A DNA stretch of 64,000 bases from Marsupella aquatica. Lineage: Eukaryota; Plantae; Marchantiophyta. Below, piece after piece: positions 51,068 through 64,000 of this stretch (within the stretch, counting starts at the first letter, position 1; each line of letters starts with the position of its first letter). The DNA is taken from the NCBI GenBank assembly GCA_973895155.1, contig OZ316898.1:9039079-9103078 (forward strand), read 5' to 3'. The notes under the pieces are model-generated. The model was not told where the DNA came from, ran no database searches, and saw only the letters and a program-made list of their open reading frames with translations. The position numbers were made by a program, and so were the translations under genes.

Positions 51068-53463
51068 TGAGAAGAATCGGACTGCCAGAAATTACGCCCA
51101 GCTCACAGAAAGGCTAGGATGCCTCATTGCAGTGACCATTACACGATGGGGTAAACGAAATTCGATGGAAGCTGATAGAAAGAGGATCGACTTGAGGTTG
51201 GGTTTGTGAATTGGGGGACTCACTATTTGGGCTGCTCAGTTTTTCACGGGGACGGCGGTGGGGCCGTTTGGACCCTGAGGGTCGCCATTCCAGGGCTTCG
51301 GCAGCTTTAGGGTAAAAGTTTTGAGACGGCCCGAACCAGGCACTTGATTGCAGCGGAAGTTTTGAGAGGGTCTGGCGTTCACTGATATCGTTCAGTAGAG
51401 AGTGAAGTGGCCTAAATTCAAATTGACACTGCTATTGCAACTTCAAAGCAATCACGGATTCTCCATTGAATGTCATCGTGCTAACCGTGACCACAAGCTA
51501 TTCAATTAATAGTCTGCGGCCATGAACGTGTAGAGAGTGTACTTGCCCGCCCTGGCGATCTAAGACCTGATCACAAGCAGTTCATGTCAAGATAACGAGA
51601 AGATGATTGTCTTTCCAACATGAAGCGAAGTAAACAAAGTCAGAAACTAACAGCAAAAATTGAGTGAAGAAAACAAACAGATGCAAGGTTCAATAAACAA
51701 ACTGATGCAAGTAATTAAGCTGCAGAAACACGTTTGACACAATCATATGCGTGTCTTCACTCGTTGACCTGCATTGCATTGGGCTCAGCAAATCTCTAAA
51801 ATTCAGACAAGAAAAAAAGCGGGGCATGTGCAAATGATGTACCTCTCGGCCAGGTTTGGAAGGGAGATGGAGCTTCATTAATATCTTGACCAGTTCCACA
51901 TGGACCACATCTATTGCCTCGGTGAGCCCTTCGCCTCAGGCTCCTGCTCGTGTACCTCGACAAGCTCAATTTCTAAACTTAATGCCCTTCGTGCTTTTTC
52001 TCTTTGTAGTTTTGAGTGCATTCATGGAGAAGAATGCACTGTCAAGATTTCGATCGGCTCATTCTGAAATTTATGATCTAATTTTCCAAAAATTGCTAAA
52101 CATAAAAATCTATTAAGATATTGGAATGTATTAAAGTCCTATTAGCAGAGCATTATGGGCACTAGTAACACCTCAAAACTCCAAACCTGAAGCCCAGATG
52201 GACCTCCACATTGTCTGCAAAACTCGGAGTAACTTCCTTGGAACCTTGAAATTGACTCCGAGAACATTGTTTACACTTAGGACTCCAATGTAAACATAAA
52301 CAGTTTCCTTACCGTTTGTAGTTGCATTACATCACTGAACAGTTCTCCTTGGTAGCTTGACTACTTGACTACCTTGAACCTGAAAGATGTCAAAACATCA
52401 TGCCATTACTCAAGAACACCAGTTTCCACTTGATCCACATGACTGAAGCATCAGGTGAAATCATGATTTACAATATTTGACCATCTTTGTGTTCATCTAA
52501 AATGGAGCAAATGATCACAAAAAAGTCTCAAACTTTGTCAGGAAATAGACTGGTGATTAGAGACTATGCTCAAAAAAATGTTAGCTTGAACAAAGGTCCA
52601 GAAGTCTTTCACTATTATGAAACACTAGCCCACTGATTATGAAACTCTAGCCCACTTCGTGTGTGTAGTATAATATTGTCAATAGTTACTAATGTTGAGT
52701 GGAAGTGTTGTTGAGCATAAGTGACATGGCCAGATAGTTAGACTGTCTTGTGAAACTGAAGTGGAAGCTATGATGAACATGAAAGGTTTATGTGATGCTA
52801 GTATAAACACATAAAACCTTGCTGAACACAAATGAAACATTTTTATTTACTCACATAGTAACTTTTGCACTTCTATTCCAAAGATGCCATGTAAACATGC
52901 ACTTGACTGGCAATAGAAGGTTATAATGCATTCTTTGATATTCTGACCATGCATCTCCATCCTCATTCAACTAAGGACTTGGATTCCCTTGTACATAATC
53001 TCTTACACTTCCTTATCATGACACTATAAAGTTCTTGTGTGCATCCAAGTAGCAATGTTGAACCTCTATGTCCATCTGAGCTTCCACTTCTGTAAAAATA
53101 CATAGTAAAACATTTTATGAAAGAATGATTAATGTGACTGTAAAGGAGCCCTTCACATGTGTGGCTGGTATTTGGGTTTATCATGCTCTACCAATGAGTT
53201 TGTGTCTCTGGTCATGGGTCCTGACCATAAATCTACACTGGAGTCGAATTTCAAATTGGATTAGGAGAAACTTCTGGCCGAGTTGGCTGTTTGCTGGTAG
53301 TTCTCCGTAAACTGAACGTATACATATAGTAAGGTCCTGCTTACACTGCATTGTGGGACTCGATCCAGTTGTGATTTTTCTGTGATACTCAGGGTGACTT
53401 ATGGGAGGACAAAAAATGTGTGATTGATCCCTAGTCCATGACCGTAGGTCTAAATTAAACTCA

Positions 53464-53811
53464 CCCTGAGTAAAGACGATATTCATAACGGCAAGCCCAT
53501 GATCATCCAATGCACAATTAATAATTGACACCGAGAGATACATGGTTCACCTCAACTGAGACTAAGTCCATGTAAATACACGAGAGCTTTATTGTACTCT
53601 AGGCCCATCGACCATTCAAAGTATTTTCAATACAAGTTCTCTCTATCTCTCAACTAGCTCTGTAACAATGAGCCTGAGTTTCTCCTCCCCAAACAAACTC
53701 TGCTTTGGGATATATTGTGCAACATGACTAATCTAACTAAGTCCGCAACTAAGGTTAGCCTTAACTATGGTTATAGTCATAAATGTAGACTTAGTGAGTA
53801 AATGCCTAACA
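53464..53811 (+). mobile_element. Degenerate copy 4 of the 344-bp solo LTR
   Basis: acggcaagcccatga...gagagatacatggttcacc...ctatctctcaactagctc...cctaaca; 5' terminus and TSD eroded. Confidence 0.75.
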
Positions 53812-55289
53812 CCATGTGCCTAATACACCATGAGTTGAGTTGTTTATTATTTTACTATTAGTTTGCCATTTATGTAAACTGTGATTTACTAGATTGCCTT
53901 TTTTCTGACATAGTACATAGCTTGCCGCTGATTAATTCTTTCTACTTATGACAATGCCATTGCTTGTGTTTGTGTTGAGAAAACTAACTCGGGTCAGTCC
54001 AATAGTTGTCTTTGCACCGAGTTTCTCGATTGGATGGCCCAGGTTTCCTCAAGGGGACTTTGACCGCCCTTGGGTCAGTGAACGAGGAGTGGGACTAAGG
54101 TTGAGTGATCCTATCCTCCCATTGATCTTACGCCCAGCCTCTCTCTAAGGCTTTGTATCTGTGCGCAGCCTCTGCCTTTGTCTCGTTGAGGGCGGTCGAC
54201 TTGAGGGAGACTGGATCCTTCCAATCGCGGATGGGGTGCAATGAAAGCTGGATGTGAATGAGCTAACCTTGGTTAATTTTCTTAACCCATAAATGAAAAT
54301 AGGGACATGATGATTTATAGGAAAAAGTAAATGACAAGGTATCTATTATGCCCAAAGTGGCATTCTACTGTAGTATATCCCCAAACTCTAGTCTCTCGAT
54401 GCCATTAGGCTACATTTCTTTCAGAGATGGTGAAGTGAAAAGAAGTCCGACATGAATCAATGGACTTCTCTCGCTTGGTGAACTCGGTTTTAGGGCTGCG
54501 AAATTTTGAGGCCCGTCTTGAATCTTGACGCACGGGAGCTGTTTCTTCTGCCTGCGAATTTTTCGATTGAATTGGATTTGAACCGCCCTTCTCTACCGAC
54601 ATCGCTCAATGTCGCCATAGGCTCGGGTTCCAGGTACTGAAGCAGCAGAAGTCGAGAACGGAGGATAGCAATACGCATCCAACAGATGCATCAGGGATGT
54701 CAAGCACCGACTGGAGGAGCGGTGGACTACGTCGTTCAGAGAGTACAGAGCACAGACCAGTGAAGTGGAAGCAACTTACGTTTGAGTGTCTTGGCTGACG
54801 TTTTGTGTCGAGATTTGTGGTCAAGTTCCACTCGACGCCATCTGTGGTACCCTGTAAATCTAAGCCTCACTGGTTAAGTCAGTTTTCTGTTCTTTGTTTA
54901 TCGAAGCCACTTCATTCCTCAGCAATTGGGGCTTCGGGGAATGTTAATTCTGCTCCTCACTCGCCAGAGCACTTCAGTTTGTTCCCAATCGTCTAACATC
55001 TAGGGTTCAGAGCTGAGAGCCGCGAGGTATTTCAAATTGTTGGATTATTTAGGAAGGAAGATAGACAGGCCGTCATATCACGGACATGGATGGGAGACCT
55101 TTGAATTCTTTTGGGGATATGAGTCTTGCACCGGATAGTTAGGTGATAGAAATAGTTCGCTGATTGACCCGGAAATCGCAGCAGGGTCTTGCTGCATATC
55201 AGTGTATTTGAAGCCTACATTGCTGTATACATTGTTGTTGGCGTTAGGAGTGCTAAGTCTCCGACTGCGGTCTTGTACTTGCTGTAAAG

Positions 55290-55931
55290 ATGACGGAGTT
55301 TTGGGTCAGTCAAGGGAACAAGTGGTGTGACTTCTGCAAGATATATATATCAAACAATCCGACTAGCATACGTACGCACGAATTGGGGACGCGACATAAA
55401 GAAAATGTTACGAAGAAGCTCGCCGGCATCAAAAAAGATACTGCCGTCAAGGAGAAGGAGAAATTGCTGGCTTTGAAGGACATGGAGAAGATCGAAACAC
55501 AAGCAAAGAAAAGCTACGAAAGAGATCTGGCGGCTATGCGTAGCTTAGATTCTACTCCGAAAGTGCCAGTCTCTGATGCCAAAAAGAAAGGCTCTGTGAC
55601 CAGGGTACAAGAGGAATCCTCAAAAGCGGTTCCAGCTGCACGAAGGGGAATTGGACGTGAGCTTGCCGACCAGACAATTGTCCCAAATGCTAAGTCACAG
55701 GCTCTTAAAGGTCAAAACTCTGCAACTCAAAATGTATCTAGTGCCTATCAATATGGAAGATCTAGTAAGGGGATGGTGGCATCTTCATTAGAGGTCAGCA
55801 AGAGGAAGAGGGTAGAAAAACCGGGGTCAAATTCTAGTGAAGAAGCTGCTGCATTGGCTGCGAGAGAATCTGCGAAGAAGAGGATCAAGGAGAGGGAGGA
55901 AGCTTTGTTGGGTCTCTATCATTCATTCTGA
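55290..55931 (+). CDS. U1-C/matrin-type zinc finger protein, ZOP1/WBP4-like; intronless CDS with no OCRE domain
   Basis: MTEFWVSQGNKWCDFCK...H...H zinc finger, then coiled coil. ZOP1-like C-terminus EEAAALAARESAKKRIKERE..LLGLY. Confidence 0.85.
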   Translation: MTEFWVSQGNKWCDFCKIYISNNPTSIRTHELGTRHKENVTKKLAGIKKDTAVKEKEKLLALKDMEKIETQAKKSYERDLAAMRSLDSTPKVPVSDAKKKGSVTRVQEESSKAVPAARRGIGRELADQTIVPNAKSQALKGQNSATQNVSSAYQYGRSSKGMVASSLEVSKRKRVEKPGSNSSEEAAALAARESAKKRIKEREEALLGLYHSF

Positions 55932-58373
55932 GATACCGTGAGGCTAGGAAACGGCGGTTGTAACTATGACTCTGAAGGGTCACTAGAAAAACGTGTCGAA
56001 CGAGTGTAGATCTCTCTAATTCTTGAATTGTGCCTAGTCTCTTCATTCTCAGGCTAGAAGGTATTCTTCGATTGTAAAACCTGGGCCTTAGCAGATGCTT
56101 TGGATTGCTCTGATGTAAGCGACTCGAAATGGGATTCTGGAGGAGTGAAATATGAGCCTTCACAGTCCAAGCTGATTCTGGATGATTCTTTGAGGCTCTC
56201 GTTGGGTGACATTGCTTTTGGCAGGTACTATACTTCATGGGGGTCTATTGAATTCCTTACTCTGTGAAAAGTTTCCTGAAGAAGTGCAAATGGTCGTCGT
56301 TTGCTCGTTCTACAGAGCAAATGACCACATGAGCTCTTATCTCTGGCTCAACAAAAGTGGTTATGAAACTGAATCCGAGGTCTAGTCCCGAAGACATACG
56401 AACCACAAGGAAGAGAAAACTATAGAAGGCGCCACGAGGGTACCCAAAACGGTTTCAGCAGATCGATTCACTCCATTGGTGGTTGTTGCATAAATTGCCC
56501 AGATGAAAGTTGATTGAGGAAATTGGGGTCCACAATTCAGGTACCCTATGGCCTTGGATAGAAGATTGAGGGGAGCTCCAGGAGGGAAACTCAACAAAAT
56601 AGAGTTTTCAAATTGGGACATGCACCCCCCGTCCACCTATTCCATGGACAGTTTTGGAGGTGGTCAACGGAAGTAGTAGTGGTCCTGCAGAAATATCTTT
56701 TCAACTAGAAGTAAACAAGAGATCTTCCCGTCACTCCTTTGGTTGGTGTCCTTGTGTGTGAGCCAAAGACTGTCCTTAGCCAAAAACGATGCTCCGATGG
56801 CTCGAGACTGGATGCGATCTTTAGTCTGCAGGTGACATTGTCTATGAATAAACGGCAAGTGCATTCAAGGGTATAGGAATTCTTCGAGAAAGTTGTGTTT
56901 GGAAATCAACCCTGTTCCAGTCTGAAATTGTCATGCGCTGTCCGTCTTAAGATCATTTTGGATGCACTCAGTTCCAAAATTTGTAAGTCAGTAGTTCACA
57001 GACTTCAGTTTTTGGTCAGAAATCATACTCGGCCACTAAAAATCCAGTTATACACTCGGGCTCATTGGCTTCACAGACTTCGGAAATTCGTTGTCCAGTG
57101 CTGACAGGTGGACTTCCCATTACATTCGGTAATCAATTCTTGTTACTGGTTTCTGCAAGAGATGTGTCCGTCATGTTTTTCTTGCAGTTTTCTTGTCAAC
57201 GGGTTTGGAATACGTCATAAGTATGTAATGAAATCTAGGTACATTCTAACAAGTGAATACCTAGTGGCCTTGCTATAATTATGTCACCATTGAATTAGTC
57301 ACTACTCTGCTCCAGATACCTAATCAAGCTGTGCATCGCCCAATGATTATGAAGTAGAAGTCGCTCCAAGGCTTTGATAGCCCATGGATTATATTGAGGA
57401 GACGTTGATGCCTTCGAGCACGAAATCCCAGGTCCTTAACCTTAGTTGATCTCTTCCGGGTGGCTAGCGACTTAACTTTGAGCTCTTGAATTACCACTTC
57501 AAATTTCTAACGAACTAAGATTTGGAACAATGTCCTCAAGTAGCATTGTGTACACAAGTAACGTTGTAAACAAACTTGTCGCACAGAACCATTTGTTGGC
57601 ATTATTGTACTGATCTGAAATCTTGTCAGGGTGCACAGAGAATAATGAAAGCCTGAAGCATTTTTGGAACATCCCTATACAAAATTTTGTTGACTCGTGA
57701 TTCATATCTCAGTGACCAAAACAGAGGAAGAAAATATGGCCATTTTTTGGCTAGCTACGAACATCGAAGTTGTCAGCCCGTGCTAGCCAAAGAGGGATAA
57801 CAGTCCAATTATTCTTCTCACGCAGTCGAGTGCCGACGAGATGCTGATTTGAGAGGAAAGTCTCCTGGCCGTCCATTGCGAAATTTGGCGGCTCAGATTT
57901 ACTAAAAGAGAATGTTCGAGAGTCTTGCTCTTCCTACTTACAGTGCAACTTCTCCACAGACCCTGTTCTTACCGTTCACTCCCGACGGCGGAGAAACTCC
58001 TCAGGGAACAAGGTGATGCAGGTGCTATGTTTTGGAAGATCTTGAATGAGGTGCACAGCTTGGGGATTCGGAGGAGCCGAGACCAGCCGAGACAGATTTT
58101 TCTATTTTGTCAACATAGTACCTGTCGCGTTGCATGACTGCTGTCCCGGTCTTGATTTGCCCAACGTGTGCTGATTTCAGCGACATCGTCTTCACTTTTA
58201 GAATTCGTTGTGATGATTAGAGAAGTTCACTCTTTGACATTGGATTACAATCCTTCGTATGCGAACCGCGACTAAGAGCTACATAAGCTTGCAAACGCAA
58301 GAATTGATCCCCTCGCTCCTGAAGCGAAGCTCTTGTAAGTTCGTGGACTGATTCATGATCTGTGAGCTTTATC

Positions 58374-61300
58374 ATGATGGCCAAGAGACGGCTGAGACCT
58401 GCTGCGTGGCGGTTGGGTCTTTCCTTGGGTGAGTTGGTAACGTGCTTCTTGTTGTAGAACTCTTTGGCCCACAGCTTTTGATTCCGAATATTTCAGTGTA
58501 CATTCAATTTTGATATTCTTGAACTAAGCATGAGTAAGCCTAAACCCTAAACCCCGACAAGCAGACGAAGCAATTTCTGAGGTGGTACGCGGTATTGACT
58601 TAATGTAACAGGTTCAGAATGGTACCAAAGGACTCTAGCCTCTTGGACGAGAGAACTTCGACCAACTGCACCTCTTTCATTATCGGGTAAGAAGGTAGTG
58701 CTTAGATTTTTCGCGTGTACTCTGTGGTCCAAGTGATTCATGTTTCTCAAGGTGGTCAACATGTGAGAACATATCATTTGTTGGTGACACACAATAAGCA
58801 ACTGTTGTTCTTTCGTCCTCTGTTGTCCTGATGATGACAGACCAGAGACGGACTGTAGAGGAACGTTGGCGGGAGTTTTTCTCAGATCCGTCACAGTGGA
58901 CGGATCACAGATTGGAGAAGGTAATTTCGTTACGATTGCTATGAAAATGGAAATAATTGGCTGTCTCAGTTCTTGCCCCGTGGAGAGTGTGCCATGGTTT
59001 TCTTTTTTCGTACTACCCTAATAGCACTACCCTTGACAGTCCTTCCTGAACCGGGCAGGGAGGAATGTGGGCTGATTAGCTGGGGTGGGATTTCTCTACG
59101 TAGGCAAATTTCAGATATCCGGACTTCAAAAACAGAAGGACTGGGGACGTTCTTTGGCTCAATGGAAAATTCAATCCCCCATGGGTGGAGGCACAGCTGG
59201 CTGCAATGTTACCGGGGTCTGTTAAGTTAACCATTTTTTCATGGAACGGAAGGCTCATAAAATATGTGAAAGCGGGGCAGTATGAGGAGGCAATAGAACT
59301 CTTTTCCCAAATGGAACAACTCGCATTGAATCTCGACAAGTTCAGTTTCATTCCTGCGATCAATGCATGCGCCAACTCACGCAACCTGGATGAGGGTAGG
59401 CGCATCCATGAGCAGATCGTACGTAGTGGGTTTGATTCCGACACAGATGTACGCACCAGCCTCATTGGCATGTATGCAAAGTGTGGTTGGATTGGGGATG
59501 CTCTCAGAATATTCAACAGCATGCCCACTCGCAGTGTGTTCGCTTGGAATGTGTTGATCCACGGATACGTGAAATGTGGGGAGGGGCAGTTGGCCTTGGC
59601 ATTATTTCTACAGCTTCAACGAGAAGGGGTGGAACCGAATCATTTCACGTTCACAGCGCTCCTGAATGCATGCGCCAGTGTGGGGGCTCTAGAGGAAGGT
59701 AAGCGACTGCATGAGCATGTGATTGCAAATGGTTATGCGTCTAATATCTTCATAGGGAGTAACCTCGTCAATATGTACGCGAAATGCGGGAGCATCAAGG
59801 ATGCTTGGGCAGTGTTTGAGCACATGCCCTCACGCGACGTAGTTGCTTGGACAGCAATGATCCAGGGGTATCTGCAATGTGGGCAGGCGGAGAAGGCAAT
59901 GGAACTATGTCGACGAATGCAGAGAGAACAGGTGGAGCCAGATGCCTTGACTTTCGTGAGGTTTCTCAATGCGTGCGCTAGTGTGGGAGACCTTGAAGAA
60001 GGCAGAAAAGTTCATGAACAGGCTTTTCGAAAAGGATTTGGATCCAATATCTTTTTGAGCAGTAGCCTGGTTGACATGTATGTCAAATGCGGGAGCATTG
60101 AAGAAGCTCGGGTAGTGTTGGAGAAGATATCTAGGTGCAACGTGGTTGCTTGGAACGCCGTGATTCAAGGATTCGTGAAATGTGAACAGGGGCAAAAGGC
60201 ATTGGAATTATTCGGTGAAATGAAACATAAATGTGTGGAGCCTAATTCTGTCACATTTGTGGGGTTGGTCAAGGCATGTACTAGTATGCAAGCCCTGGAG
60301 GAAGGCCGGAGTATCCACAAAGAGATCATTCAGAGAGGTTTTGAGTCGGATGTTATTGTGAGTAGCAGTCTCGTCGACATGTATGCCAAGTGTGGAAGTA
60401 TAGAAGATGCTTGGAGTGTGTTTGACAAGATGCCTGAACGCAATGTGGTGTCTTGGAGTACCATGATCCAGGGATTCGTAAACTGTGGTCAAGGGCGGAA
60501 GGCATTGGACCTCTACAATCAAATGCAATGCGAGGGCGTGGAACCGAATAATGTGACCCTTGTGGGGTTGCTGAATGCTTGTGCTAGTATACGTGCCCTT
60601 GAAGAAGGTAGGCGAGTTCATGATCTGATCACCGAAAGGGCTTGGGACTGTGATGCCTTTTTGGCGAGTAGCCTTATTGACATGTACGCTAAATGTGGGA
60701 GCTTAGATGATGCTTGTAGGGTTTTCAAGGAGATTCGAACTCGTGATGCTGTAGTCTGGAATTCTCTGATTCACGGATTTTTGAAATGTGAGGAAGACCT
60801 CAAGGCTTTGGAATTATTTCGTCAAATGCGACAGGAAGGGTTAGAGCCAAACTCTGTTACCTTTGTGGCAATTCTCAAAGCATGTGCAAGTCTCCGTGCA
60901 TTGGACGTAGGGATGGAGATTCATGAGCAGATTATTTACCTGGGTATGGACTCCGATGTATTTCTGGGAAACGGCCTTATTGACATGTATGCTAAATGTG
61001 GGAGAATAGATAATGCCTGGAGAGTGTTCAAGAAGATGCCCACACGGAGTGTGGTCTCCTGGAACACTTTGATTCAGGGATATGTAAAATGTGGTCAGGG
61101 CCACATGGCATTAGAAACATATGAGCAGATGCAGCGGGATGGGGCAGAGCCAGACTCCGTGACCTTTGTTGGGATGCTTAATGCATGTGCCAGCGTAGCA
61201 GCACTTGAACAAGGGAAGACTCTTCATGAACAAATATTGCGAAAAGGTTTAGAGGATGATATCTTTGTGGCCAATAGTCTCATTGACATGTATGCCAAAT

Positions 61301-62277
61301 GTGGGAATATAGAAGATGCTTCCATTGTGTTCAATAAAATGTGCACACGCAATCTGGTCTCTTGGAATGTCATGCTTGGAGGCCTCTCCATGCATGGGCA
61401 TGCTATTGATGCTCTTGCACATTTCGAACGAATGTGTTTAGAACGGGTAGAGATGGATAAGGTCACATTTGTCTCTCTCATTGGAGCTTGTAGCCATGCA
61501 GGCCTAGTAGATGAAGGTCTACATTACTTTTATTCCATGAGTTCAGTTTACGGTATTCCTGCAGCGACGGAAAACTATGCTGGCATAGTTGATCTTCTTA
61601 GCCGTGCTGGTCGTTTGCATGAGGCTGAGGACATGATTCGGACCATGGCCTGCGACCCACTTGTCACTGTTTGGATGTCCTTGCTTGGTGCTTGCAGAGT
61701 TCATGGTAATATAGAGATGGGTGAACGCACCGCAGAAGTGGTTCTGGAGATGGATTCTACGAATATAGCAGGCTATGTCTTGCTATCAAACATCTATGCT
61801 GCTGCTGGCAAGTGGGACAGCATGGCTAAGGTTCAACAGCGGAGATTGGAAAGAGGCGTGATCAAGCATCCTGGACGAACCTGGATTGAAGTAAATAACA
61901 AGTTACATTCATTTACCGTAGGTGATAAGGAGCATCCTCAAATACTGGAAATTCATTCAGAACTGGAACGATTGAGTGAAGAATTGACGGAGGAAGGTTA
62001 TGTTCCAGATATGAGATATGTTCTACATGATGTTGAGGAAGAAGAAAAGTTGTCTCATTTGTGTCATCACAGTGAGAAGCTGGCCATCGCATTTGGGCTC
62101 ATTAGCACACCTCCCGGTACTCCTCTCCGCATTATGAAAAATCTTCGGGTTTGTGGCGATTGTCATACTGCCACAAAATTCATTTCAAAGATAGTTCAGC
62201 GAACCATCATTGTACGGGATGCAACCCGGTTTCATCACTTTACGGATGGCCACTGCTCGTGTAGGGATTATTGGTGA
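58374..62277 (+). CDS. PLS-class PPR-E1-E2-DYW RNA-editing factor with N-terminal transit peptide and OSB-type PDF motif. Exons 58374-58428, 58612-58686, 58841-58920, 59104-62277 (~1127 aa)
   Basis: 7 PLS triplets + P2L2S2. PG box (KHPGRTWIE), [14 protein letters not shown], terminal DYW. Upstream exons have GT-AG ends and matching phases (1,1,0). Confidence 0.9.
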
Positions 62278-63172
62278 GCGGAGTTGTGTAATGCGTCTCT
62301 GGATTCAATACTCCAAACCTAAGTACAATATTGACGTGTGATCTGTTGAAGGGAAGAGAGAACCTCACATATTTGTAGAAACCGGAGTCTATAGCCTACT
62401 TATCATAATGATGTTCCTGGTGAAGACCAGACCAGATCATTATGAGTGGTCTTGGTCTCTGAAATCTGCCGTGGAAATCACATTTATAAAAAAAAAGTGG
62501 GCAGGATACAGAAGCAGGGAAGTAGCAGAGGACAACTTCCATGGTCGCTGAAGTTCGTCTTGACAGGCCGCAAGGGAAAATATACTACACGGAAACAGGT
62601 GCGTAGTACAGGAACTAATCTTAAAGAGGAACAGGACGAGAGAAGAGGACCACTACTGAGGTTGTGCTGCCCGAGCACTGCTTCGTACCGCAGAGCGAGA
62701 AACCACAACACCGAGTAAGAACTGGGTGCGGACGAGAACTTTACCAAAGGTAATCTACGATGAGGGTACCAAAAGGCCCAACAATACTCCTTCTATAACC
62801 ACAGACAGTAATTCCACTCTGCTGCATTGAAGGGTTTTATGGCCCACAACTGAAAAGACTTTCCAAATCTAATTTCACTTAATTCTTGCATTTTCTTACA
62901 GATGACTCCGTCAAGCTGAGAATCTTTGCTACTGTGAACTACCACCCTCGCGTACCCCATGGCGAGTGAGGCTGACAGTGAAAATCGACTGAACAAATCG
63001 TGCGACTGAAGGAAGCTGAGGAATTAATTCTAATCAAGTCCACTGAGGAATTTGTCAATCTTTTCTCCCGTCTATCACGAATCCGTCATTAGCGTGCAAG
63101 TTAACTCATTTGTCCGAATCATCGCTCATCATGCATGCACAATGAACTAGTTTTCTCCGAGGTTCCTCCACT

Positions 63173-63792
63173 TCAAGACGGTAAGATGTTCAGAGCAACT
63201 TCCTTTAATGTTGGCATCGTTTCCTGCTCATGTATGCACACGAACTGGTAATCCACTCTCCTCAATACTTGCCAAGGTCCTGGGTAAGCCCTGCCAGTAC
63301 CACGAAGTTTCAAATTTATGACTGTCTTGCAGAAGAAAATGTAACTAGCAGGTAAACGTTAAAGCTTCGTACCTGAAGAGAGTGCCTCCAGAACGGCCCT
63401 TGAAATTATGGATGTAGTATACTGTTTCAAATTTTGGGAGGAAGTTTTTTGCAAGAGCTCCCAGTTTTGGATAGAAGAAGGAAGGATAGTCTAACGAACT
63501 GTTAAGATTTTCCAATCCAAGATCAAAAGTCGGTATGTAACATATTTGGGGGCCCTAAGCCCGAGTTCCAGCCACACGTTTCTCGTATCCAGCTAATTCG
63601 TTGCTCAACTCTTAGCAGAGAATATTCACAAACAAAGAGCAGGTAATAAACCAATCACGGCAGATTATATAAAATAGCTCAAGTGAAGGATACAGCCACT
63701 CCTTATTCTATCCAGTTCACCGTTGAAAACAATGATTGGTCGTCCGGAAGCTTCGGCAGAATCTTTATACAGTTCCTCAACCGCAATCATCT
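63173..63792 (-). CDS. LPA3: 3' part of LOW PSII ACCUMULATION 3 (DUF1995 family). Exons 63792-63694, 63490-63373, 63290-63173; gene continues beyond the window
   Basis: EMIAVEELYK...IIVFNGELDRIRSGYYPSFFYPKL...ETVYYIHNFKGRSGGTLFRAYPGPWQVLR...MPTLKEVALNILPS*. Confidence 0.9.
63491..63693 (-). other. U12-type (minor spliceosome) GT-AG intron in LPA3
   Basis: 5' splice site GTATCCTT. Branch site TCTTAAC about 10-16 nt before the AG. No polypyrimidine tract. Confidence 0.85.
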
Positions 63793-64000
63793 CTACACCC
63801 CAAACACAGAAATACCCACCGCACATGAAATGGCTGAACCGACTTCGAAACCTACAACGTAGAACTCTTACAACTGGATCACCAGCTTTAAAATTACTCT
63901 AGTGACAGCACCTCATAGAATTCTGGTAGAAATTTCCTTTATCAACGAGGATTAAATTCTGTACATTAACACATCACCAAGGATTCAATTGTACAGTTGC

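Follow-up and report, generated by a model that had tools for sequence, protein, structure and literature searches.

In a 64,000-nucleotide (nt) stretch of the genome of the liverwort Marsupella aquatica (contig OZ316898.1, positions 9,039,079 to 9,103,078; hereafter the window, with positions counted from its first letter), we found that a gene on the forward strand at 58374..62277 encodes a PPR-DYW protein carrying, directly before its first PPR, a PDF motif of the kind present in the OSB family of plants (organellar proteins that bind single-stranded DNA). The best explanation of this gene, to which we give a probability of roughly 0.6, is a PPR-DYW editor with an ancient OSB-type PDF domain that most likely acts as an accessory single-strand grip 5' of the PPR footprint. 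The earlier note on this DNA had presented the combination as a chimeric editor; a framing of it as unique has to be abandoned because the architecture is old and widespread in liverworts, mosses, and lycophytes and occurs in at least one fern. The PDF-PPR architecture is old, common, and apparently undescribed, and the window gene is one slightly degenerate member of it.

The locus holds a nuclear gene with four exons, and its plant is a leafy liverwort that stands close to Calypogeia. Four exons bordered by GT-AG introns on the forward strand join into a frame of 1127 codons (55 + 75 + 80 + 3174 = 3384 nt, or 1128 codons including the stop). Exon 1 (58374..58428) supplies the ATG and opens a presequence rich in Arg and Leu, of which it encodes the first 18 codons plus 1 nt, with an in-frame TGA located 15 nt 5' of the ATG at 58374, and ends at the donor G/GTGAGT (GT at 58429). 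Intron 1 (58429..58611, GT..AG with the acceptor AG at 58610-58611) is followed by exon 2 (58612..58686), which holds the remainder of the presequence, and intron 2 (58687..58840, GT..AG with the acceptor AG at 58839-58840) by exon 3 (58841..58920), an 80-nt mini-exon that encodes the first half of the PDF motif (W.EFF..P.QW[T]D.R.EK). Intron 3 (58921..59103, donor GT at 58921 and acceptor AG at 59102-59103) is in phase 0 and lies inside the motif. Exon 4 (59104..62277), an upstream extension by 27 codons of the 1030-amino acid (aa) open reading frame listed for the window, begins with the second half of the motif (59104..59205; ..YPDFK[N]RRT..LWL....NPPWVEAQL) and also encodes the PPR array, E1/E2, the DYW domain, and the stop codon. 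The exon coordinates and splice joins proposed in the earlier note held up, in that the GT-AG borders and phases all fit and the Calypogeia fissa ortholog is annotated with the same four exons.

The motif was recognized with a 62-column hidden Markov model (HMM) that was built from 26 complete motifs of other PPR proteins and run on the six-frame translation of the whole 64-kb window. The exon 3 frame (58798-58941) matched HMM positions 2-28 with 39.9 bits (E 4.7e-11), and the first 35 residues of exon 4 matched positions 29-62 with 44.0 bits (E 2.4e-12), so that the motif halves abut exactly at intron 3. No further match to the PDF HMM was present in the rest of the window, where the next best hit had an E value of 0.16. 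The motif had been described as complete, which is right insofar as both halves match the HMM but has to be qualified, since two signature residues are altered (WWD to WTD and KH to KN). Window searches, alignments, and scores were made per single exon, with the annotated ortholog (P0001) serving as a stand-in for the whole protein.

To relate this segment to OSB proteins, 1.84 billion cluster representatives were scanned with HMMER using a 34-column profile of the second half of the motif from six genes. The second half alone was used because hmmbuild ignores the terminal gaps of fragments, and a mixed full-length input would have kept PPR columns. At E≤1e-3 the scan retrieved 649 protein clusters, of which 173 also pass E≤1e-10; its top matches are mostly proteins 300-530 aa long that carry 2-6 copies of the motif toward the C-terminus. 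A Pfam SSB/OB-fold domain precedes the PDF repeats in P0132, P0148, P0152, and P0223, while an SSB match below the Pfam cut-off was seen in P0137 (Sinapis alba) and, near its C-terminus, in P0121; among 109 long top matches, SSB was detected in 33 and PPR in 7. When scored on the full PPR-derived HMM, the OSB-type PDFs reach 65-95 bits per domain over both halves, the first of which had not been used in the search; in P0223, for example, SSB spans residues 83-176 and a PDF scoring 95.5 bits spans residues 327-384. Because the OSB copies score over both halves of an HMM made from PPR proteins only, the homology of the PPR-borne segment to OSB PDF repeats is solid at the level of sequence comparison, and the claim that this is the OSB PDF motif is borne out: a profile of PPR origin retrieves proteins with an SSB domain and C-terminal PDFs at 65-95 bits. 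Word-index searches with the motif alone gave no match, which is not evidence of absence, as they need several shared exact 5-mers in a 40-residue stretch; a search of the ESM Atlas with the motif, in which PPR families were skipped, gave no usable match. Some proteins, among P0121 (Kingdonia uniflora, 1160 aa) and P0122-P0124, carry 9-13 PDF repeats, a number well above the one to five known for OSBs (PMC13393729). PDF repeats were also seen in the 1526-aa protein P0156 of Coptis chinensis and the 1063-aa protein P0144 of Striga hermonthica, whose annotations are kinesin motor domain and "interactor of constitutive active ROPs 2"; either gene models have been merged in these cases or they are additional PDF fusions.

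The presence of the motif was counted among the 120 closest PPR homologs, 36 of which carry it by a simple PDF[KR] pattern and 42 by the HMM. It was found in the liverwort Calypogeia (5 of 6), the mosses Sphagnum (9 of 12) and Ceratodon (1 of 1), and the lycophyte Diphasiastrum (11 of 18, where several negatives are gene models that begin just past the motif), and in none of the homologs from ferns (0 of 3), Ginkgo (0 of 13), and Cryptomeria (0 of 13). The HMMER scan added a PPR protein of the fern Adiantum with two N-terminal PDFs (P0158), and some lycophyte proteins have two or three tandem PDFs ahead of the PPR array. The fusion of PDF, PPR, and DYW that had been proposed thus exists in bryophytes and lycophytes, but the motif is also attached to PLS/E-type PPRs without DYW: only 23 of the 42 PDF-bearing homologs have a DYW-type end (DYW/DFW/GYW/EYW/NYW/SYW), which indicates that the motif goes with PLS arrays in general.

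Annotated proteins mapped to their loci have the same layout in two Calypogeia genes and in one gene each of Ceratodon, Sphagnum, and Diphasiastrum (L001-L005), namely, one or more presequence exons, a mini-exon of 78-81 nt, a phase-0 intron after "..R.EK", and a long exon. The earlier suggestion that the intron-split motif is under selection agrees with this comparison across genes, in which the motif is conserved and the intron occupies the same place in all five PPR genes checked. Since the architecture and the split intron are common to liverwort, moss, and lycophyte PPR genes, and a fern PPR protein has N-terminal PDFs, the PDF-PPR fusion is ancient, judging by gene structure and sequence. 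A GT-AG phase-0 intron (1009/1450) was also found at the identical place inside an OSB-type PDF, in an angiosperm contig (L007) encoding the C-terminus of a single-PDF OSB that is 68% identical to P0223 up to the stop codon. A PDF intron universal to OSBs was rejected, since a Sinapis OSB gene with three PDFs (L006) has all of them in one exon. Trees were built from 111-151 PDF domains, and in them the copies borne by PPR proteins group together (5-7 changes versus 33-36 in shuffles); a single clade of PPR-type PDFs is not rejected by the approximately unbiased test (p-AU 0.41). With its 62 columns, the PDF tree is compatible with one origin and goes no further than that. It is tempting to picture the PDF as an ancestral single-strand-binding aid of land-plant PLS editors, gained once by exon shuffling from an OSB-like gene, as the shared phase-0 intron would suggest, before the bryophyte/vascular split. 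At the nucleoid it would have helped to capture target RNA that is nascent or unfolded (or else the DNA strand that is displaced), and it would have been lost in the seed-plant line as MORF/RIP took over the boosting of PLS-PPR binding. MORF/RIP helper proteins are restricted to seed plants (PMC13386178). As a whole, this scenario is speculative and quite unlikely to be right in every part.

Two further observations concern the genes of this family. In the PPR-DYW protein P0054 of Ceratodon purpureus, the second half of the PDF lies on its own 177-nt exon (L002:1094-1270), and a non-PPR spacer of ~100 residues separates the PDF from the array, in contrast to the tight linker elsewhere. Public OSB and PPR gene models often miss the ~80-nt mini-exon (e.g., P0183, P0194, P0209, P0212, P0215, P0231, and P0243); such models begin either directly after the motif (P0097 and P0119) or with a stretch of translated intron whose last residues are "..LQ", from the CAG acceptor, a pattern suggestive of systematic misannotation brought about by the conserved intron.

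A whole-exon search returned PLS-class PPR proteins, with the 1129-aa C. fissa protein P0001 at the top (83% identity, 100% query coverage). In its annotated N-terminus, the counterparts of the three small window exons are all present and are followed by a canonical PDF motif. The Calypogeia locus L001 aligns across the whole region, and all six splice dinucleotide pairs are kept. Exon identities are 83-90%, with indels of 3, 6, and 3 nt only (one of 3 nt in exon 1, one of 6 nt in exon 2 at 88% identity, and one of 3 nt in exon 3 at 90% identity). The introns are 73-79% identical, with indel lengths that are mostly not multiples of 3 (1, 3, 1, 17, 1, and 4 nt in intron 1 at 78.8% identity; 1, 12, 2, 14, and 1 nt in intron 2 at 73.4% identity; 1 and 14 nt in intron 3). 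The ratio of nonsynonymous to synonymous substitution rates (dN/dS) against Calypogeia is 0.89 for exon 1, as expected for a transit peptide, 0.71 for exon 2, 0.15 for the first half of the PDF, 1.11 for its second half, and 0.19 for the remaining 1023 codons of PPR-E-DYW. Exons 1 and 2, in which dN/dS is thus 0.7-0.9, encode an Arg/Leu/Ser-rich segment that has no acidic residue in its first 20 positions and is disordered in the model of the ortholog.

The remainder of the protein is that of an editing factor. Downstream of the PDF, a short conserved linker and the PLS-type PPR array occupy 59206..61701, followed by E1/E2 (Pfam E_motif and Eplus_motif) at 61702..61986, including the PG box at 61867-61893, and by the DYW cytidine deaminase domain at 61996..62277, with HSE starting at 62068, CGDC starting at 62152, the terminal DYW reaching 62274, and then the stop codon. 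Pfam models matched exon 4 (59104-62274) with E values of 7e-140 for PPR_2, 8.6e-122 for PPR (17 stretches), 1.6e-69 for PPR_1, 1.2e-16 for PF20431 E_motif (exon 4 residues 867-929), 6.4e-06 for PF20430 Eplus_motif, and 6.1e-44 for PF14432 DYW_deaminase, and the sequences HPGRTW (PG box), HSE, CGDC, and the final DYW are intact at 61867-62274. No Pfam model covers the N-terminal PDF segment. Neither PF00436 nor another OB fold was detected in exon 4 at E≤1, no beta-barrel is present in the AlphaFold model of the ortholog, and exons 1-3 encode 70 residues only. Enzymes of the PPR-E1-E2-DYW type act on RNA of mitochondria or plastids, where each converts a specific cytidine, or a few of them, to uridine by deamination. 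The gene accordingly encodes a PLS-class PPR-E1-E2-DYW protein, as the earlier note had recognized from its sequence, and is a predicted C-to-U editor of specific mitochondrial or plastid RNA cytidines.

The structure of the ortholog P0001 was modeled with AlphaFold from an alignment of 56 homologs. Residues 1-47 are disordered (pLDDT <50), and the PDF forms a small compact domain at residues 50-108 (pLDDT 71-89) that consists of a helix (51-60), short strands at WWD, FKH, and LW, and a second helix (99-106). The first PPR helix starts at residue 116, ~9 residues past the PDF, and helix pairs extend to residue 886 (~23 hairpins), followed by E1/E2 and the DYW fold. The PDF of P0246, folded alone, adopts the same topology with a pLDDT of 81-94.

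How the PDF contributes to such a protein is best considered from the geometry of the PPR array. The array would read RNA in parallel, with its N-terminal repeats making the first contact on the 5' nucleotides, and, as these repeats lie on the 5' nucleotides, the PDF would sit just 5' of the sequence-specific footprint. There it could serve as a sequence-independent grip that raises affinity, keeps the target unfolded, or helps to capture nascent RNA, while the DYW domain would perform the chemistry on RNA. Binding and first contact depend above all on the N-terminal PPRs and on the target's 5' end (PMC13324415), and native sequence 5' of the PPR footprint boosts editing by PPR56 (PMC10482289). 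That the PDF binds single-stranded nucleic acid in a sequence-independent way beside the PPR footprint, with RNA as its ligand, is a tentative reading whose chances we put somewhat below even. Its main rival is a nucleoid tether, raised in the earlier note, in which the PDF would bind single-stranded DNA (ssDNA) in transcription bubbles, R-loops, or replication intermediates, enrich the editor at the nucleoid, and thereby allow cotranscriptional editing. The PDF, and not the OB fold, is the ssDNA-binding element of OSB1 (PMC6963530, PMC6451138), the PPR-borne motif is strongly homologous to OSB PDFs over its whole length, and it is predicted to be a separate compact domain, all of which would suit a tether; the short conserved linker to the first PPR, on the other hand, suits contact with the strand held by the PPRs rather than with a second molecule, and the window copy is degenerate at invariant positions. 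On balance, we regard the tether as unlikely but as deserving serious consideration. Several points weigh against the grip that we prefer. OSB1 and OSB2 prefer ssDNA over double-stranded DNA or RNA (PMC4166229), a preference easier to reconcile with a DNA tether than with an RNA grip, and ssDNA binding by PDFs is known from Arabidopsis OSB1/2 only (PMC4166229, PMC6963530). Moss PPR56 edits faithfully in Escherichia coli with only 14 residues before its first PPR (PMC10482289), which implies that an N-terminal module is dispensable for site choice and catalysis, at least in PPR56, which may or may not carry a PDF. A Foldseek search with the isolated PDF model returned nothing at E≤0.001 (the top row was a WWE domain with E=2), VIA-align 2 gave a best Z of 2.7 over 48,161 chains, and a sequence search of the Protein Data Bank with the second half of the PDF found no chain at E≤10; there being no solved fold relative, structure offers no functional lead. 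The comparison with OSB PDFs called for in the earlier note came out strong by HMM. Moreover, the exon model of the window gene, including its splicing, is a prediction that rests on comparison and on the annotation of another species; the four public runs that contain this DNA are all of genomic DNA or Hi-C contigs (with loose ends at GATC) and show no splice joints. Finally, the window copy reads QWTD and PDFKNRR, while all 26 PPR-type motifs, including that of the Calypogeia ortholog, have QWWD and PDFKHK. Its score, summed over the exons, is ~84 bits versus a median of 104.8 (range, 77.8-115.2), and its second half differs from Calypogeia by 12 nonsynonymous and 3 synonymous changes (Fisher test versus the rest of the gene, p=0.015).

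These last observations bear on the possibility that the ancestral PDF was functional but is now a decaying relic that contributes little in this lineage, an idea that overlaps the other readings and that we find doubtful. It would account for WWD becoming WTD and KHKK becoming KNRR at positions that are invariant in the 26 PPR-type motifs and consensus in Calypogeia, as well as for a dN/dS of 1.11 in the second half compared with 0.19 elsewhere (p=0.015). EA is further replaced by DV at well-conserved positions where Calypogeia keeps the consensus. Contigs from runs of "organism B" differ from window 58078-60113 at ~20 sites, and the changes at 58841, 59112, and 59135 (D to G, F to L, and R to K), in or beside the PDF, each give the Calypogeia residue; a sister species, alleles, or a second subgenome could be behind these differences. 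Yet the first half shows a dN/dS of 0.15, neither the frame nor the splice sites are damaged, most of the signature residues (FF, PDFK, LW, and PPWV) are intact, the counts are few (15 substitutions), and the WTD and KN departures remain within the range of the family, as OSB PDFs also display PDFKN and W[E/R/Q/Y/F/L]D. Small as they are, the counts suggest that constraint on the second half has relaxed or shifted in this lineage, and the window copy has drifted at two otherwise invariant positions, so that the activity of the motif may be weakened. Many helical-repeat proteins need caps, and the PDF might have a role unrelated to nucleic acids, as an N-terminal cap that stabilizes the PPR solenoid or as a surface for protein-protein contacts or oligomerization; the similarity to OSBs would then be uninformative about the ligand. 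The PDF abuts the first PPR helix through a conserved linker, up to three tandem PDFs precede some lycophyte PPR arrays, and AtOSB2 is a tetramer (PMC6963530). Such a role is nonetheless decidedly improbable, given that the aromatic/basic signature (W, F, K, H, and R) is typical of single-strand binders and has been kept for >400 million years in OSB and PPR proteins, and that the tandem copy number in OSBs scales with the length of ssDNA needed (PMC6451138). Another alternative leaves exons 1-3 outside the mature mRNA; translation would then begin within exon 4, whose first in-frame ATG is at 59206, and the similarity upstream of it would be a dead remnant. The splicing of exons 1-3 is predicted from comparison, and many public models of relatives begin directly after the motif, as noted for P0097 and P0119. 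Against it stand the comparison with Calypogeia, where splice sites are kept, the exon indels preserve the frame, and the exons are more alike than the introns; the dN/dS of 0.15 in exon 3; the identical exon structure annotated in five genes of four genera; and the fact that a protein beginning at 59206 would be without a presequence. We see only a slim chance for a late start. PDF-guided deamination of cytosines in ssDNA, the second idea of the earlier note, is very unlikely, to the point of being close to negligible: its one argument is that a motif of the ssDNA-binding type and a deaminase share one chain, whereas DYW and E1/E2 are of the ordinary RNA-editing PG type, the long PLS array specifies an RNA site, the motif and the active site would be at opposite ends of the modeled solenoid, ~1000 residues apart, and the same motif occurs on PLS/E proteins without a deaminase.

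The window protein can be compared with several known systems. It resembles PLS-class PPR-DYW factors (Physcomitrium PPR56 and PPR65, and the consensus PPR-DYW structure, PMC13324415) in its array, E1/E2, DYW domain, and presequence-like N-terminus, and its best homologs are annotated PPR-DYW proteins of bryophytes and lycophytes. Published schemes and constructs of PPR-DYW proteins take the first PPR as their starting point and regard everything upstream of it as a signal peptide (PMC10482289, PMC9459714, PMC13324415), whereas in the window gene a conserved PDF domain, predicted to be folded, lies between the two. With OSB proteins it shares the PDF motif itself and, in one OSB-type gene, the same phase-0 intron. 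OSBs are built of an SSB/OB-fold domain followed by PDF repeats (PMC4166229, PMC6963530, PMC13393729), so that their PDFs are C-terminal and often repeated; the window protein, by contrast, lacks an OB/SSB-like domain, and its single PDF is N-terminal and directly precedes the first PPR. The absence of an OB fold and the N-terminal position of the PDF indicate that the window protein is not an OSB and shares only the module. The partners of this module are an RNA-reading array and a deaminase, while OSBs act in surveillance of mitochondrial DNA recombination and not in RNA editing. PPR proteins with accessory modules, such as maize PPR4 (N-terminal RRM), PPR-SMR proteins, OTP51 (LAGLIDADG), and RRM-PPR fusions (PMC9459714, PMC13386178), offer another parallel; unlike in PPR4-type fusions, the module here is a PDF, which has no Pfam model and is attached to PLS-class editors rather than to P-class proteins. 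The PDF is absent from the PPR fusions in a 2026 kingdom-wide survey of editing factors (PMC13386178), and a search of the full-text literature, with subscription papers outside its scope and an earlier mention there thus possible, found no paper linking the PDF with PPR, DYW, or RNA editing. Within the same scope, the literature gave no functional description of a PDF combined with PPR or DYW, in agreement with the earlier note, which knew of none.

Among the site-specific RNA base editors of plants, PPR-DYW proteins are the ones understood best, and work is under way to turn them into programmable editors; current models and constructs all start at the first PPR repeat. A PDF lies ahead of the array in most editing-type PPRs of the sampled liverworts, mosses, and lycophytes, and in early land plants it would extend the "simple" single-protein editosome by an unrecognized component. 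Families dedicated to RNA editing and to DNA maintenance would thereby be linked by a shared exon pair. The PDF has no Pfam model. Annotations of editing factors from non-seed plants are systematically truncated, because the first half of the motif is encoded by an 80-nt mini-exon that many public models miss.

The surroundings of the gene were compared with those of the Calypogeia ortholog. No match to the Tim17-like gene upstream of the latter was found in window 53000-58295, and, downstream, window 63172-63880 on the reverse strand is 79% identical to the DUF1995 gene located 3' of the Calypogeia ortholog, which makes the two loci syntenic on this side. Within intron 1, a plant telomere-like repeat, CCTAAACCCTAAAC, is present at 58539-58552, and these 17 nt are missing from the Calypogeia ortholog.

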